From the NCBI GenBank assembly GCA_025603075.1, contig MU626292.1:1-64000 (forward strand): a stretch of 64,000 nt of DNA, given 5' to 3'. This document shows, one piece after another, positions 9,345-40,800 of this stretch. The DNA comes from Neoconidiobolus thromboides FSU 785. Its lineage: Eukaryota; Fungi; Entomophthoromycota. Each line of letters begins with the position of its first letter. Position 1 is the stretch's first letter. A model generated the notes under the pieces. The model did not search any database. It was not told the origin of the DNA and saw only the letters and a program-made list of their open reading frames with translations. A program made the position numbers and the translations under genes.

Positions 9345-10898
9345 ATGGATGTGACTAAGCTATTGGCTTCAATCTTATTTCTTTTTAGCTCTTCAATCAT
9401 CACATTTAATGTCAATAGCAACAATAACTTAGTACTTTATTGGGGACAAAATTCATATGGTGTAAAGCATGGAAATAACCCAAATGCCCAAAAACCATTA
9501 AAGTACTACTGTGAACAGCCTGGAGTATCACTTATTAATATCTCATTTATGCATATCTTTGATGGGAAAAACTCGCCTCTGATTACACTTAGCAGTGCAT
9601 GTGGAACTACATTCCCGGGTTCTAAATTATTAAATTGTCCTGATGTTGGTGCTGATATTAAATATTGTCAATCGAAAGGTATAGCCATTTTAATGTCATT
9701 GGGTGGAGCTGAAGGAGCTTATGGTTTCGCAAGTGATGCTGATGGTAAAAGCTTCGCTCATCAAATCTGGGATTTATTGTTTAAAGGAAAAGCTACAAAT
9801 AGACCATTTGGTGATGCAGTGTTAGATGGTATAGATTTGGATATCGAAGTCGGATCTCCGATCGGATATGCTGCATTTATTAGCGAATTACGTACATTGT
9901 ATTCGAGCGATCCCTCTAAGAAATATTATATCGCTGGTGCTCCACAATGTCCATTTCCGGATAAGTACCTTGGTCCTTCTTTAAATAGTGCATGGTTTGA
10001 TATGGTATTTATTCAGTTTTATAATAACTACTGTGGCTTAAGTGGTCAATTCAACTATGCTGATTGGGATAAGTGGGTAAAAATTACCGCAGTCAATAAA
10101 AACGTGAAATTATATGTAGGATTACCAGGTGCTCAAGCTGGTGCTGGTAGTGGCTATGTTGATGCTAGTGCTATTTCTTCAAAATTAGTACAAGTGCGTT
10201 CGCAGTTTTTAAACTTTGGGGGCTTAATGCTTTGGGATGCTTCTCAAGTTTATAATAATGGAAATTTTGGACAAAGTGTAGCTAATTTCTTAGCTCAAGG
10301 AGGCAATGGAGGAGTTATCTCAGCTCCTATACCTACTGCCGACTATAGTTCTTTAGCAAACCCCAATGGTACTAGTATTGCTCCAGCTCCCGAAACTTAT
10401 TCAACAAATGGGAATCCTTACAGCAGCTATGGAGGAAATACCCTAAGTTACATGTATACAACTAGTGGTAACCCTATAGTGACTAGTAGCGGCGACCCGA
10501 TAATGACTACTACTGTTGCTAATACAGCACCTGGTTATGGAGCTTACTCAACTGACTGGAGCCCTTACAAAGATGAAGAAATGGTCCCAACTTTTGCATC
10601 CGCTACTAATATACCTCTATTGACTACTACTGCGTCTTCCTTAACTAATACCATATCTCCCTTGACTACCCCTATTCCAACTCCTACTCCTAGTTATGGA
10701 ACCTACTTAACTACATGGGGACCTTATAACAATGAAGGAAGTAATCGTAATGCTAATATGCAGGGAAATATCCCAGCTCCTATATCTACTACTAACCCTA
10801 CACTTGCGATAGCTACTACTGTCGTTACTCCTCCTATTTACGTAGCTCCCTCAATTGGACAGAATCCTTACGCCAGAAAAAGGAACAACCATTATTAG
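9345..10898 (+). CDS. Secreted GH18 class III chitinase with Ser/Thr/Pro-rich C-terminal tail, intronless
   Basis: Signal peptide, LVLYWGQN, MSLGGA, catalytic LDGIDLDIE (DxxDxDxE), APQCPFPD, FIQFYNNYC, GGLMLWDAS; followed by ~190 aa low-complexity tail. Confidence 0.95.
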   Translation: MDVTKLLASILFLFSSSIITFNVNSNNNLVLYWGQNSYGVKHGNNPNAQKPLKYYCEQPGVSLINISFMHIFDGKNSPLITLSSACGTTFPGSKLLNCPDVGADIKYCQSKGIAILMSLGGAEGAYGFASDADGKSFAHQIWDLLFKGKATNRPFGDAVLDGIDLDIEVGSPIGYAAFISELRTLYSSDPSKKYYIAGAPQCPFPDKYLGPSLNSAWFDMVFIQFYNNYCGLSGQFNYADWDKWVKITAVNKNVKLYVGLPGAQAGAGSGYVDASAISSKLVQVRSQFLNFGGLMLWDASQVYNNGNFGQSVANFLAQGGNGGVISAPIPTADYSSLANPNGTSIAPAPETYSTNGNPYSSYGGNTLSYMYTTSGNPIVTSSGDPIMTTTVANTAPGYGAYSTDWSPYKDEEMVPTFASATNIPLLTTTASSLTNTISPLTTPIPTPTPSYGTYLTTWGPYNNEGSNRNANMQGNIPAPISTTNPTLAIATTVVTPPIYVAPSIGQNPYARKRNNHY

Positions 10899-34195: not shown

Positions 34196-34891
34196 ATGGC
34201 CGTGATAAGTTTATTAAAAATGGTAAAAAACCGAGTAGGTTTAAGTACCAAACGAGATACATTTTTAGATGGTATGACCTTAATGGACATTCATAAGAAA
34301 CCAGTGAAACTTAATTTATTATGGAAAAAGAACACGGTGATATTAAAAATATTACGACGATTAGGGTGTCCAATGACACGTTATGAATGTAAACTGTTAA
34401 CCTTATTAAAACCTCATTTTGATAAAATTGGGGTACGTTTGGTAGCTATTACATTCGAAGAAAAAGAATGTCAAAATTTTTTATTTGGTGGCTTTTGGCA
34501 AGGAGATTTATTGGTGGATAAAGATCGAGTTTCATATCGTGCATTGGGATTAAATAAACAATCCGCTTTAGTTGGTTTATCCGACCTTTTTACTTCCAGT
34601 GGTAGAACAGCAATGAAAGCAGCTAAAGAAGCTAATATTCAAGGTGATTTTAAAGGGGATGGATTTCAATTAGGAGGTACTTTTATTGTTAAAAAAGGGG
34701 GTGGGGTTGTCTACGAGTTTCGTCAAAATTCAAGCTCAGTATTCCCTTCAATTAAAGAAATTTATTCAATCGTTGGTGGTAACCCGGATGATGTGGAGGA
34801 AATTGCACCTTTAGAATGCGTGTTTCATCAAGGTTCTAAACAGAAAGTTAGTACCTCAAAGGACGACGAATGGTTATTTAATTTAGCTTGA
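34196..34891 (+). CDS. Peroxiredoxin-like 2 family (PRXL2/FAM213, AhpC-TSA_2) redoxin, intronless
   Basis: LRRLGCPMTRYE, GVRLVAI, SYRALGL, IQGDFKGDGFQLGGTFIV. Confidence 0.85.
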   Translation: MAVISLLKMVKNRVGLSTKRDTFLDGMTLMDIHKKPVKLNLLWKKNTVILKILRRLGCPMTRYECKLLTLLKPHFDKIGVRLVAITFEEKECQNFLFGGFWQGDLLVDKDRVSYRALGLNKQSALVGLSDLFTSSGRTAMKAAKEANIQGDFKGDGFQLGGTFIVKKGGGVVYEFRQNSSSVFPSIKEIYSIVGGNPDDVEEIAPLECVFHQGSKQKVSTSKDDEWLFNLA

Positions 34892-36196: not shown

Positions 36197-37936
36197 ATGA
36201 AACTTTTATCCTCTTTACTATTATTACCTTGTTTAGTCCTTAGTAGTATCGTTAAGCAAGAGTGGACCTTAACAGAAGCCAAAATTGCACCAGACAACTA
36301 TGTAGTTGATGGTGTTTTAATCAATGGTAACTTCCCTGGTCCACAGATCAATGCAGTTGCTGGAGACTCAATTGAAGTATTAGTACACAACAACTTACAT
36401 AAGAATGTGACCATCCATTGGCATGGAATCACCCAAAAAGGTAGTGTCAAAGCTGATGGAGTACCTTTCATTACTCAAGCACCAATTGCAGCAGGGGCAT
36501 CTTTTACTTATAAATTTAATTTGTATGACCAATCGGGTACTTATTGGTATCATGCTCACACCGACATGGACGCTGAACATATTTATGGGGCATTGATTAT
36601 TAAGGATAAACCAGAGATCTGGGCAGATGTAGTTAAATTTAACCCAAAATATCAATACGATGAAGAATTAACCATTTTATTATCTGAAAGATGGCATAAA
36701 ACTACTGAAGAATTGATTTATGGATTAAATAATCAACCTTTTAAATTTAGTAATCAATCTCAAAGTATATTAACAAATGGAAGAACTTATCAAAAATGGG
36801 ATAATAATTTGAATGGTGGCACTCAAGCCGATTTAAATCGATTCAATTATGGCTTCAGTGTTACTAATGTTAAGCCAAATAAAACGTATAGAATAAGATT
36901 GATTGCTGGAAATGGATATTCTTTATTTACTTTTAATGTTGACAAGCACAACTTAACAATCATTGAAGCTGAAGGTACCATTGTTGACCCAATAGATGTA
37001 GACAGAATGGAATTAAGCAGTGGTCAACGATATTCGGTATTATTAAAAACAAATCAAAACGTTGATAACTATTATATGTATACTCAAGTAAGTGATGAAT
37101 TACGTCCTGAAGCTCGTAAACCAGTAGCCAAAAATGGGGTTGCTATTTTACATTATGATGGTGCTAGCCCTGTTGATCCTTTAATTCGAGCCGACAAACA
37201 AGTACCCGGATTACAATATGAATACTCTCATTGGGTAGAATCTCAACTTTTTACTTCTCAATGGTATAATAAAGGCTTATCAAGTCATTATTACCCAGTC
37301 CCTAAGAAAGTGAATAAGGAAATTAACCTTATTGTTACCTTAAGAAAGCCAGGAAATTTATCTAGATGGTTTGTTAATGACGTTGAAAATACCCCAAGAT
37401 CTACTGTTTTGATTGATGATATGGAAGCTGGAAGATATCAACCAACTCAGGGTATTTATGAAATCAATGAGGGCGATGATGTCCAACTCATTGTTCAACA
37501 TACTATGCCAACCGGCAAAGCATGTGAAGTTCATCCATGGCATTTACATGGCCATTCATTTTATGTAGTTGGTCATGGTAACGGTTTTTATAATCCATCA
37601 GTTGATGGACAAAAGATTGATGACTATTTAGCAACAACTAAAAATCTACCAGTTTTAAGAGATACTTATAGTCAATTTATTACTGATATTCCTGAAGTTG
37701 GAAAAAAATTGAATCAAACAAATTCAAGACTTGGCCCACTTAATATCCATGAAGATATGTTTTCTGGGTTAAAAGAATTAAAGGATAAATCCCTTAATGC
37801 AGATGATTTACCCTGTGGTTGGTATGCTATTCGTTTTAAGGCTAACAATCCAGGCTCTTGGTATATGCATTGCCATATGTCCCCACATATCATTATGGGC
37901 AAGGTGGTTGTCATCAACTATGTACCTAAGAAATAA
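36197..37936 (+). CDS. Secreted three-domain multicopper oxidase (laccase/ascorbate-oxidase-like, AA1), intronless
   Basis: Signal peptide, INGNFPGP, HWHG, GTYWYHAH, HPWHLHGH, NPGSWYMHCHMSPH. There is no C-terminal TM helix, so it is not Fet3. Confidence 0.95.
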   Translation: MKLLSSLLLLPCLVLSSIVKQEWTLTEAKIAPDNYVVDGVLINGNFPGPQINAVAGDSIEVLVHNNLHKNVTIHWHGITQKGSVKADGVPFITQAPIAAGASFTYKFNLYDQSGTYWYHAHTDMDAEHIYGALIIKDKPEIWADVVKFNPKYQYDEELTILLSERWHKTTEELIYGLNNQPFKFSNQSQSILTNGRTYQKWDNNLNGGTQADLNRFNYGFSVTNVKPNKTYRIRLIAGNGYSLFTFNVDKHNLTIIEAEGTIVDPIDVDRMELSSGQRYSVLLKTNQNVDNYYMYTQVSDELRPEARKPVAKNGVAILHYDGASPVDPLIRADKQVPGLQYEYSHWVESQLFTSQWYNKGLSSHYYPVPKKVNKEINLIVTLRKPGNLSRWFVNDVENTPRSTVLIDDMEAGRYQPTQGIYEINEGDDVQLIVQHTMPTGKACEVHPWHLHGHSFYVVGHGNGFYNPSVDGQKIDDYLATTKNLPVLRDTYSQFITDIPEVGKKLNQTNSRLGPLNIHEDMFSGLKELKDKSLNADDLPCGWYAIRFKANNPGSWYMHCHMSPHIIMGKVVVINYVPKK

Positions 37937-39363
37937 GCAAAGAGTTATTATATAATAAATCATTTAATTTCTAAATTTTTATATAGTCTATAAATGAGTG
38001 AATTTTATTAAATTGTGTTGAATATATGAAAACAAAATAATAGTGTCAAATATTCTAAAAATAAGGTTGGCTTTTGATATCTTATTAAATTTTATGTCGT
38101 ACATATTAATTAATTATTTTGTTTCATAATTGTACTTTATCTTTAGATGTAAATAATAATTAGATATCCCCTATGTTAACAAATAATCAAGTGTAAATAA
38201 GTTTATGTTAATATATTTTTGTTTTACCATTTTGTTCATTTTTTATGCAGTATATTTTTAAAAAACATAATCGTCAAATACTTACATTGCAAACAATAGT
38301 TCCTTAACTATAGAAAGCAAACCTACGTAATTTTCATAATTACAGATCCTTAAATTCAATCATAAAAAATACAATTGAAATTACAAATCATAACTAAGCT
38401 ATAAGGTTGAATTTTAAAAAGAAATCGAAGTTATTATAAACAGCTGAAAAAATTTAGCAAATAGACATTATTATCACCCTCATTATTAATACATTGAAGT
38501 GAAATTTTAAAAATAGCTTTAAAATTATCAATCACATACTTAAAATAACTCACCTAATGCTATGTTAGACTGATAAGCTTTACTTTTAAATATTAGTTCA
38601 ATATATTTTATTTCTCGGGTTATTTCCAATGTTTGTATGTAATTTCATTATATAAAATAACGTCCTTGTATTGAATGTTATCTTATATAGCTTAAAGTTT
38701 CCAAAATCAGGACTTTTGTTTTGTTTTTTTTGAATAAAACGGTGAGTTTATGTGAAACTTTGACTAATAGGTAGGTTACAAAAAACCATACTGATAATGT
38801 TTTTTTACTAAATCTATAAATAAAATACATGGTTTTAATAAAAGTTTAAAATTAAACGTTATAAGCATCTGATAAATTAATTTAAAATATACTAATAATA
38901 GAAAGTTAATATAATGAATATCGGTATTCCTTATAAATCAAAAATGAAAAGTATTTTATAAATAATATTTCAGCGTTTTTATAAAAGAAGTTTACCTTAG
39001 ATTTACAATAATTGAGAACTTGTAATTACTAAACGGTTAACTTTAAAAATAGCAGTAAAAAATATTCAAAAATGATAACATTTTATAATATCCCTTAAAT
39101 AGATATTATCGTGACTAGCTTTATTTCTAGATTTCAATACAAAAGTTCTAAAAATAAAATTCTTATTATCCTAACATTTATTTTTAGTTAAAAAATTGCT
39201 TACATGTCATAAATATATAATTTATCATACTTATTTTCCCGGCTTATGGCTTGTCACCATGATTTGAAAGTTCTCGTATGTTATGTAATATTAATGTGTA
39301 AAGTTTGCAAAATACTATATAAACCTATCTAAATAGATTAATATTAAAACAAATTATTTCAAA

Positions 39364-40800
39364 ATGAAAATTATAAACGTAGTTACTTTATTGACTATTT
39401 TAGACATAACCTATTCCTTGTCTTTGGAAAACCTTCAACCAAGGGCTTACTTAGGAGTAAACAATGTGTCTCATTTAAAGAGAAGAGGATATGGCCCCAT
39501 TGCCGCTGCATGTAATTTCCAATCAAGATTAACAGCAGCCACTACTGAACCTGGATTTGATGCCATTATGAATGATTGTAATAATGCTTACACTACTCTT
39601 TTGGTCAAAGATCCATCCCAACAAAATGCTATTGCTCTCCAAAATGAAATTGTATATATCAAAGAGCAGTTTAGTGTGTATAAGAATAATTACTTTTTGA
39701 CCCATCCTACAAGTCCCTCCTCTAGCTCAACTCCCAGCTCTTCTTCAACTGCTACATCTTCTTCAAGCACTTCAACATCAACTTCTGCACCTGGGAGCTC
39801 AACAACTGCAAGCTCCACAACAACCTCTAGCAGCAATCCGAATCCAACCGAATTTCCACCAGGCCAAACCATATTCCAACGCTGTGATTTAGAAAACAAG
39901 ATCAAAAATGCTCAGAAAAGAGATGAATTAAATACCATCTACAGCTCATGTGGTTTAGCTTACAATCAATTATTAAACCATGACCCCAGTAAAGTTAATG
40001 AGCTGAATACAGAATGGCTTAAGGTTCAGGAAAGAATCAAGAGAGCTTATGAAGAATTCAAGGATCCTACTACTACCAATCCTCCTGTTACTAGTACTAC
40101 TACCGGTACTACTACTGTCACCACTACAACTAACACAACTACCCCTCCTGTTACTACTACCACTACTACCACTACATCTTCTGGCCCCACCCCTACTGGG
40201 GTTCCAAGCGGTCAAACCATTACTCAACGCTGCGATCTTGAAAGCAATATCAATAAAGTATCTAAGATGGAGCAATTTGACCTGCTTGTTAACTTATGTA
40301 GCAAATCATATAGTGATATCTTAACTGCTTATCCAAGTAGAATCAACGATTTGAACAGTGAATGGCAAACTGTTGTAAATAGGATCCAAGCTGCTAAGAT
40401 TCAATTTGCTGCTGGAAATAAACCAACTTCTAGTACTGCTACTGCTACAACTACCCCACCTGTAACTACAACTACTGCTACTGCTACTACCGGCTCTACT
40501 ACCACTACCACTACTCCAAGCACTACTGTCACTACCACTACTACATCCTCTGGCCCTACTCCTACTGGAGTTCCAAGTGGGCAAACTGTCACCCAACGTT
40601 GTGACCTTGAGAATAATATCAGCAAGGTAAAGAAAATGGTTGAATTTGATACCATCGTTAACTTATGTAGTAAGGCTTACAGTGATATCTTAACTGCTTA
40701 TCCAGGTAGAATCAATGATTTGAACAGTGAATGGCAAACTGTTGTAAATAGGATCCAAGCTGCTAAGATCGCCTTTGGTACTAAAAATCCAGGTAGCTAA
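39364..40800 (+). CDS. Secreted Thr/Ser-rich protein with four repeats of an unrecognised ~60 aa Cys-containing domain, intronless
   Basis: Signal peptide, Kex2-like KRR at aa 40-42, four C-x21-C modules separated by Thr/Ser/Pro linkers. Confidence 0.9.
   Translation: MKIINVVTLLTILDITYSLSLENLQPRAYLGVNNVSHLKRRGYGPIAAACNFQSRLTAATTEPGFDAIMNDCNNAYTTLLVKDPSQQNAIALQNEIVYIKEQFSVYKNNYFLTHPTSPSSSSTPSSSSTATSSSSTSTSTSAPGSSTTASSTTTSSSNPNPTEFPPGQTIFQRCDLENKIKNAQKRDELNTIYSSCGLAYNQLLNHDPSKVNELNTEWLKVQERIKRAYEEFKDPTTTNPPVTSTTTGTTTVTTTTNTTTPPVTTTTTTTTSSGPTPTGVPSGQTITQRCDLESNINKVSKMEQFDLLVNLCSKSYSDILTAYPSRINDLNSEWQTVVNRIQAAKIQFAAGNKPTSSTATATTTPPVTTTTATATTGSTTTTTTPSTTVTTTTTSSGPTPTGVPSGQTVTQRCDLENNISKVKKMVEFDTIVNLCSKAYSDILTAYPGRINDLNSEWQTVVNRIQAAKIAFGTKNPGS

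Follow-up and report, generated by a model that had tools for sequence, protein, structure and literature searches.

The four-module gene and its protein

The window analysed here is a 64,000-nt stretch of contig MU626292.1 of Neoconidiobolus thromboides FSU 785. At 39364–40800 on its plus strand, it carries a gene for a putative secreted protein in which four copies of a small, predicted helical module with a strictly spaced cysteine pair (C-x21-C) are connected by linkers rich in Thr, Ser and Pro. The gene is a single uninterrupted open reading frame (ORF) of 478 codons (478 amino acids, aa) with zero internal stops, and the surrounding DNA, with a GC content of ~26%, contains few long ORFs. 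It is intact and intronless in N. thromboides. A TATA-like motif (TATATAAA) can be read on the same strand at 39316–39323, 41 nt 5′ of the ATG, and may be part of the promoter. The GC content at third codon positions (GC3) is slightly higher than in the adjacent ORFs (0.30–0.32 versus 0.19–0.29), which fits, if weakly, with high expression. The protein atlas contains the four-module protein letter for letter, so that a public gene model for it exists, and it also contains a paralog encoded on contig C241. A search of a 15-billion-protein collection for the exact sequences of the four-module protein, the C241 protein and a three-module paralog from contig C114 returned no match.

From the N-terminus, a signal peptide is followed by a short pro-region that ends in KRR and then by four modules of ~70 aa alternating with three Thr/Ser/Pro linkers of ~50 aa. 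An earlier note on this DNA, written from the sequence alone, had described the same outline, with module starts at ~39490, 39862, 40210 and 40579; our re-analysis agrees with it and places the starts at 39487, 39859, 40207 and 40576. The start codon and signal peptide (about residues 1–18/20) occupy 39364–39423 and were placed by hydropathy and by comparison with paralogs, which carry canonical signal peptides at the equivalent position; the position of the cleavage site is approximate. This leader is the sole strongly hydrophobic 15-residue window of the whole chain. The pro-region (39424–39486) is polar, contains one NVS sequon and ends in the dibasic sequence K39-R40-R41, a probable site of Kex2-type cleavage.

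Module 1 (39487–39708; Cys50/Cys72) belongs to what we call type 1, as judged by its identity to paralogs and a tree of modules, and is followed by a Ser-rich linker of 50 aa (39709–39858; 84% Thr+Ser+Pro). Module 2 (39859–40059; Cys174/Cys196) falls into the type-2 clade (support 98/95) and precedes a Thr-rich linker of 49 aa with runs of ACT and ACC codons (40060–40206; 78%). Module 3 (40207–40419; Cys290/Cys312), also of type 2, is 77% identical to module 4 and separated from it by a third linker of 52 aa (40420–40575; 79%). Module 4 (type 2; Cys413/Cys435) extends together with the stop codon over 40576–40800. All these elements are on the plus strand. The Thr+Ser+Pro content of the linkers thus ranges from 78 to 84%, as expected from the Thr/Ser/Pro linkers named in the earlier note, which had also claimed that the protein has no transmembrane helix or glycosylphosphatidylinositol (GPI) signal. 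Our hydropathy scan likewise detected neither a transmembrane helix nor a GPI tail, the C-terminus being polar and the only hydrophobic window N-terminal. The protein does not carry the C-terminal hydrophobic attachment signal of GPI-anchored fungal wall proteins.

The protein contains exactly eight cysteines, and these form the four C-x21-C pairs listed above. In 4/4 modules, the first position of the motif C-xx-(A/S)-Y-xx-(L/I)-L-xxx-P is the second cysteine of the pair, and the motif is followed by a long amphipathic stretch. The arrangement of four pairs arose in 0/20,000 shuffles of the protein. The exact spacing and motif that had been claimed for each module are confirmed.

Dibasic residues occur only at positions 39–41, 185, 226 and 423, and linkers 1–3 hold none. 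The site located 8–9 residues before the first cysteine is kept within the family, as RR in the paralogs on contigs C114, C241 and C179 and as KR in a protein of Massospora cicadina described below. A KR(E/D) motif is also present inside the Cys–Cys loop of module 2 (39916–39924) and of type-2 modules in several paralogs (L003, L004), while modules 3 and 4 are without a loop KR. If Kex2 cut at the loop motif, the product would be a two-chain module held together by its disulfide.

The fold of module 4 was predicted with AlphaFold2, given an alignment of family modules with 18 rows. In the resulting model (mean pLDDT 92.8, pTM 0.79), helices span module residues 6–9, 12–17, 23–42 and 44–71, such that two short N-terminal helices pack on a long helical hairpin. 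The hydrophobic residues of the module follow a heptad-like core pattern when read from the sequence. The module is accordingly modelled as a small three-helix-type bundle of ~65–70 aa. A model of a full-length three-module paralog repeats the identical helix pattern three times, connected by linkers with pLDDT <50, at a pTM of 0.35. Since the linkers are disordered and the overall pTM is low, the modules are not expected to pack together, and they would form beads on a string even where linkers are short; a compact single bundle of the three modules in this short-linker paralog was discarded on the same grounds. Small helical modules arranged as separate beads had been anticipated by the earlier note, which had also suggested a single-module structure prediction followed by a fold search. 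The prediction gave a confident fold and the search no catalogued structural relative.

In the model of module 4, the first cysteine falls in the gap separating the two short helices at the N-terminus, and the second is positioned midway along the first of the long helices. A disulfide pinning the N-terminal strap to the hairpin is therefore plausible. Its assignment draws on the spacing of 21 residues, which all family modules with two cysteines keep, on the secretory route of the protein, and on the joint replacement of both cysteines in two type-3 modules and the Massospora homologue. Some type-3 modules and a 208-aa protein from contig C114 keep a single cysteine, which counts against the bond.

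Relatives of the module

Searches of reference collections support the statement in the earlier note that the module belongs to no recognised family. Pfam was scanned with the complete protein, with its modules one by one and with seven relatives, and gave sub-threshold or compositional matches only. The GA module (PF01468) matched 22 residues of module 2 (E 0.012; 16.3 bits against a cut-off of 24) and no other module, and CRASP-2 (PF22487) reached 13.6–14 bits against a cut-off of 27, with E 0.05 for the solved Borrelia CRASP-2 chains in a profile search of PDB sequences, which was also the best value of that search. New_glue (PF21827; 27 bits versus 31) and Mucin (PF01456; 14.7 versus 34.7) stayed below their cut-offs and matched in the Ser/Thr linkers only; these matches are compositional. 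No match to HsbA (PF12296) was obtained at E ≤ 10 with the full protein, individual modules or the paralogs, and no HsbA structure ranked among the top fold matches.

Structure comparisons led to the same result. Foldseek returned zero matches at E ≤ 1 against the PDB. The best VIA-align score among 48,161 chains was Z 8.7, below the level that the tool deems meaningful for helical bundles; the leading matches, ribosome recycling factor, phytochrome helices and spectrin repeats among them, were unrelated helical segments. The protein atlas listed no feature-based neighbour of the protein, and its structural neighbours were generic. The literature searches found no description of a C-x21-C module family. 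The domain is thus absent from the catalogues that were searched. Its fold is of a common helical kind, and there is no sign of an unusual mechanism.

Relatives were recovered by searches specific to the family. A word-indexed protein search returned nothing with module 3 as the scored region and, when run with an alignment of full-length paralogs, only P0001, P0003 and P0004. When 1.84 billion protein cluster representatives were searched exhaustively with an HMMER profile, six matches were obtained: three from N. thromboides, one from Massospora cicadina, one ankyrin-repeat protein (P0005) and one protein from a Logan assembly (P0006). Paralogs from the assembly are letter-for-letter identical to NCBI proteins of N. 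thromboides FSU 785.

The M. cicadina protein (KAI0244039.1, P0004) is a true homologue (profile E 1.6e-12; hhalign 98.2%) and uncharacterised as well. It consists of a type-1-like module, preceded by KR, and a type-3 module. It differs from the four-module protein in having two modules only, in the replacement of the cysteines in each of them and in the lack of Thr-rich stalks. As annotated, it starts without an obvious signal peptide and ends in a basic tail; part of the 5′ end may be missing from the public gene model. In P0006, a methyltransferase-like N-terminal half precedes three C-x12-C-P-xx-Y-x-D-L-(L/I) repeats, and the chain ends in a hydrophobic tail. The similarity of this protein to the module profile (E 2.1e-6 in the same search; hhalign 88%) could reflect either remote homology or convergence on a helical motif. 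The match to the ankyrin-repeat protein was taken as spurious.

To survey the family in the fungus itself, we used module 4 and subsequently a profile of the module as queries against the N. thromboides FSU 785 assembly (24.6 Mb, 799 contigs). Together, these yielded ~25 matching stretches, corresponding to at least nine or ten genes. Contig C114 holds three of them, coding for proteins of 137, 208 and 308 aa with 1, 1 and 3 modules, respectively, while C241 holds one gene (271 aa, 3 modules) and C45 another (332 aa) with 2 modules on either side of a long Ser/Thr region. Partial family genes are located at the ends of C179 and C648. On C102, a tandem array on one strand at 56.4–63.3 kb (L041, L008–L010, L029; spacing 1.5–1.8 kb) comprises one intact gene of 189 aa (P0003) and further copies with stop codons or lost cysteines, a composition that indicates birth-and-death evolution. 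One family gene appears to be split over the ends of C102 (L031) and C101 (L035); its open frames overlap in a shared stretch, ...QKISQVTKREQFDTILNT..., and the two contigs could be joined. The 208-aa member on C114 (L040:5785–6411, minus strand) has an extra N-terminal segment containing Cys, and Ser in place of the first cysteine of its module; in leader and C-terminal part, it closely resembles the adjacent 137-aa gene.

Within this family, the four-module protein has the most modules and the longest linkers. It shows the features by which we delimit the C-x21-C family, namely a profile match, the helix pattern and a secretory leader. Its four modules score 92–113 bits against profile A2, a profile built with them included; its membership is independently backed by the comparisons between subtype profiles (97–98.5%) given below. 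The family is real and uncatalogued and, on present data, covering the 1.84 billion representatives and the fungus's own assembly, confined to Entomophthorales.

Divergence of the modules and the shared tract

The family modules fall into three types. Type 1 is always first in the chain, directly after the dibasic site; type 2 has the form "GQTIxQRC...LNSEW"; type 3 is last and often without one or both cysteines. In hhalign comparisons among the three types, probabilities of 97.3%, 97.0% and 98.5% establish that all are homologous. In a maximum-likelihood tree, modules cluster by type and not by gene, with a support of 98/95 for the type-2 clade; module 1 is found within the type-1 clade, and modules 3 and 4 are sisters (100/99). 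The four-module protein therefore reads type 1, 2, 2, 2, and type 3 is absent. Module 1 had been described as a copy too diverged to notice except by its cysteine spacing. It is indeed a diverged copy (hhalign to type 2 97.3%, E 1.6e-11), yet as a type it is well conserved, with 69–79% identity to the first modules of the paralogs. The three types are anciently diverged and, as placed in the tree, had separated before the divergence of Neoconidiobolus and Massospora.

Paralogous modules were compared by their proportions of nonsynonymous (pN) and synonymous (pS) differences. With pN at 0.14–0.27, far below pS at 0.63–0.87, the modules are evidently under purifying selection.

Modules 3 and 4 depart from this pattern over part of their length. 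Codons 1–36 are saturated at synonymous sites, whereas codons 37–66 differ at three positions only. At the nucleotide level, the module 3 copy at 40312–40400 and the module 4 copy at 40681–40769 (both on the plus strand) share a tract of 89 nt in which only 2 positions differ, whereas identity falls to 70.6% over the 102 nt immediately preceding it (Fisher p = 1.7e-5). Correspondingly, pS is 0.11 within the tract as opposed to saturation upstream. The assembly contains two copies of the tract in total and no third. The earlier note had reported ~77 nt starting at 40324 and ending at 40400 with about 2 differences; the number of differences holds, and the tract is slightly longer than described.

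That note had further concluded that the array was recently duplicated or homogenised. Only the second part stands, and for the 89-nt tract alone. A recent duplication of units 3 and 4 is ruled out by the saturated synonymous sites of the 5′ half; these, together with an identity of only 78% over the whole 369-nt unit, mean that the array was not recently duplicated and that only its 3′ part was homogenised. The tract carries the signature of a short intragenic gene conversion, or of unusually strong constraint at this place. If the former holds, modules 3 and 4 provide a clear example of intragenic gene conversion acting on part of a repeat.

Possible roles and genomic surroundings

Entomophthorales are important natural killers of insects, and to our knowledge almost nothing is known about the molecular biology of their surfaces. 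Fungi commonly have secreted repeat proteins restricted to single lineages, and the kind of protein described here is a familiar one: a secreted, modular, mucin-linked glycoprotein. From general fungal cell biology, we infer the cleavage, the glycosylation and the disulfide, and from the architecture the entire functional role. On secretion, the signal peptide would be removed, and the pro-peptide would be lost in the Golgi after probable Kex2-type cleavage at KRR. The Thr/Ser/Pro stalks would become heavily O-mannosylated and thereby stiffened and extended, and the Cys pairs would be oxidised, pinning the short helices to the first helix of each hairpin. The mature chain would then present four independently folding three-helix modules held apart by stalks of ~50 aa, with the helical modules as binding units and the glycosylated stalks as spacers, giving four similar binding surfaces along an extended, hydrated chain.

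Our preferred, still tentative reading is that the protein could be a multivalent extracellular binding or matrix protein, belonging to a surface coat, a wall-associated layer or an adhesive secretion. We favour it because four surfaces on one extended chain are the design of extracellular binders and adhesive glycoproteins; an abundant structural or adhesive role would also fit the mucin-like linkers, the missing anchor, the multivalency and the slightly raised GC3. Metarhizium MAD1 is an example of a fungal mucin-like adhesin or wall glycoprotein. Like the four-module protein, it is secreted by an insect pathogen, combines a folded N-terminal part with Thr/Pro-rich, presumably O-glycosylated stalks, and has a presumed role at the interface between fungus and surface. 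The two differ in that they have no sequence relation, that the protein described here has no GPI signal and repeats small three-helix units along its chain, and that its role is putative.

Several observations weigh against a binding or matrix role. In the Foldseek and VIA-align comparisons, the predicted fold, a small helical bundle of generic type, gave no hint of function. Attachment to the wall is not indicated either, as the protein has neither a GPI signal nor a Pir repeat nor any other motif known to link proteins to the wall. Its conserved residues are mostly core hydrophobics, and the conserved polar residues E53 and R60 (module numbering) are situated at helix interfaces, where they may have a purely structural role. 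The family can do without the disulfide, given that the Massospora homologue has neither cysteine. Finally, tandem arrays with decayed copies fit fast-evolving effectors equally.

This last point leads to an alternative that we place on the unlikely side, namely a host-directed secreted effector whose modules bind insect immune or cuticle proteins and whose module number raises avidity. The restriction of the family to insect-pathogenic Entomophthorales, the divergence of modules down to ~20% identity, the birth and death of genes suggested by the stop-containing copies in the C102 array, and the small, Cys-containing, secreted nature of the modules are all compatible with such a role. There is precedent in bacterial surface proteins, which use tandem three-helix modules to bind host proteins: GA modules (PF01468) and protein A domains are likewise helical bundles of ~50–70 aa, arrayed in tandem on an exported protein and multivalent. 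They belong to a different kingdom, have no disulfide and no glycosylated stalks, however, and the likeness is one of analogy, not homology. An effector would also have to be reconciled with purifying rather than diversifying selection in the module comparisons made, with long mucin-like stalks that are unusual for small diffusible effectors, and with the life of N. thromboides as a saprobe as well.

Binding of a hydrophobic surface or of lipid, by which the fungus or its enzymes would dock on the waxy cuticle, seems improbable. It is suggested by analogy with HsbA and Mp1p-type helical mannoproteins (PF12296) only, in which all-helical secreted domains are likewise combined with Ser/Thr-rich regions in fungi, and by the presence of a helical bundle on such a protein in a cuticle-invading fungus. 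However, those proteins have a five-helix lipid-binding bundle, and the C-x21-C module is about half that size and matches neither their profile, even at E ≤ 10, nor their structure among the top fold matches. Moreover, a ~70-aa bundle with a heptad-patterned core, as read from the sequence, would leave little space for a lipid cavity.

Still less probable, indeed very much so, is a Kex2-processed polyprotein precursor whose separate peptides act singly. Such a precursor would account for the conserved dibasic site before module 1 and for the KR(E/D) in the loops of module 2 and of several paralogs' type-2 modules, and the signal peptide, dibasic processing site and repeats are shared with Kex2-processed repeat proteins (KEPs) such as Ustilago maydis Rep1. 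The four-module protein nevertheless falls outside the KEPs: with zero dibasic sites in the three linkers, release of single units is not expected, modules 3 and 4 have no loop KR, and the linkers resemble glycosylation-type stalks, not spacer peptides. That the ORF is non-functional, arising by chance or representing a decaying repeat, is hardly credible. The exact protein is not in the 15-billion-protein collection, as such an origin would suggest, but a 478-codon frame is very improbable by chance in DNA of 26% GC, pN is far below pS against paralogs that share the signal peptide and the module order, the predicted fold is confident, and the identical atlas entry reflects a public gene model.

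The earlier note had named an adhesin, lectin, effector or inhibitor; on sequence and model comparisons, this range appears neither supported nor refuted. A review states that what makes entomophthoralean secretions sticky is undetermined (PMC8588673), which makes the C-x21-C family a candidate and nothing more. A broader proposition, which we consider doubtful, is that the module might be a new extracellular binding domain special to Entomophthorales, either as a proteinaceous glue or coat of conidia and secretions or as a new kind of multivalent binder of insect proteins. In practical terms, the family offers a concrete, easily expressed candidate of ~70 aa, confidently folded and with one putative disulfide, and the C-x21-C module defines a domain worth adding to family databases.

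The neighbouring ORFs of the window are fungal in type and include a GH18 chitinase, a multicopper oxidase and an ALG9-type mannosyltransferase. Two intronless genes, co-oriented with the four-module gene, lie just upstream of it: an AhpC/TSA_2-type redoxin gene (34196–34891) and a gene for a three-domain multicopper oxidase (36197–37936). No functional link between either of these genes and the four-module protein was seen. Further away, at 9345–10898, a long intronless ORF encodes a GH18 chitinase domain (Pfam E 1.4e-18).

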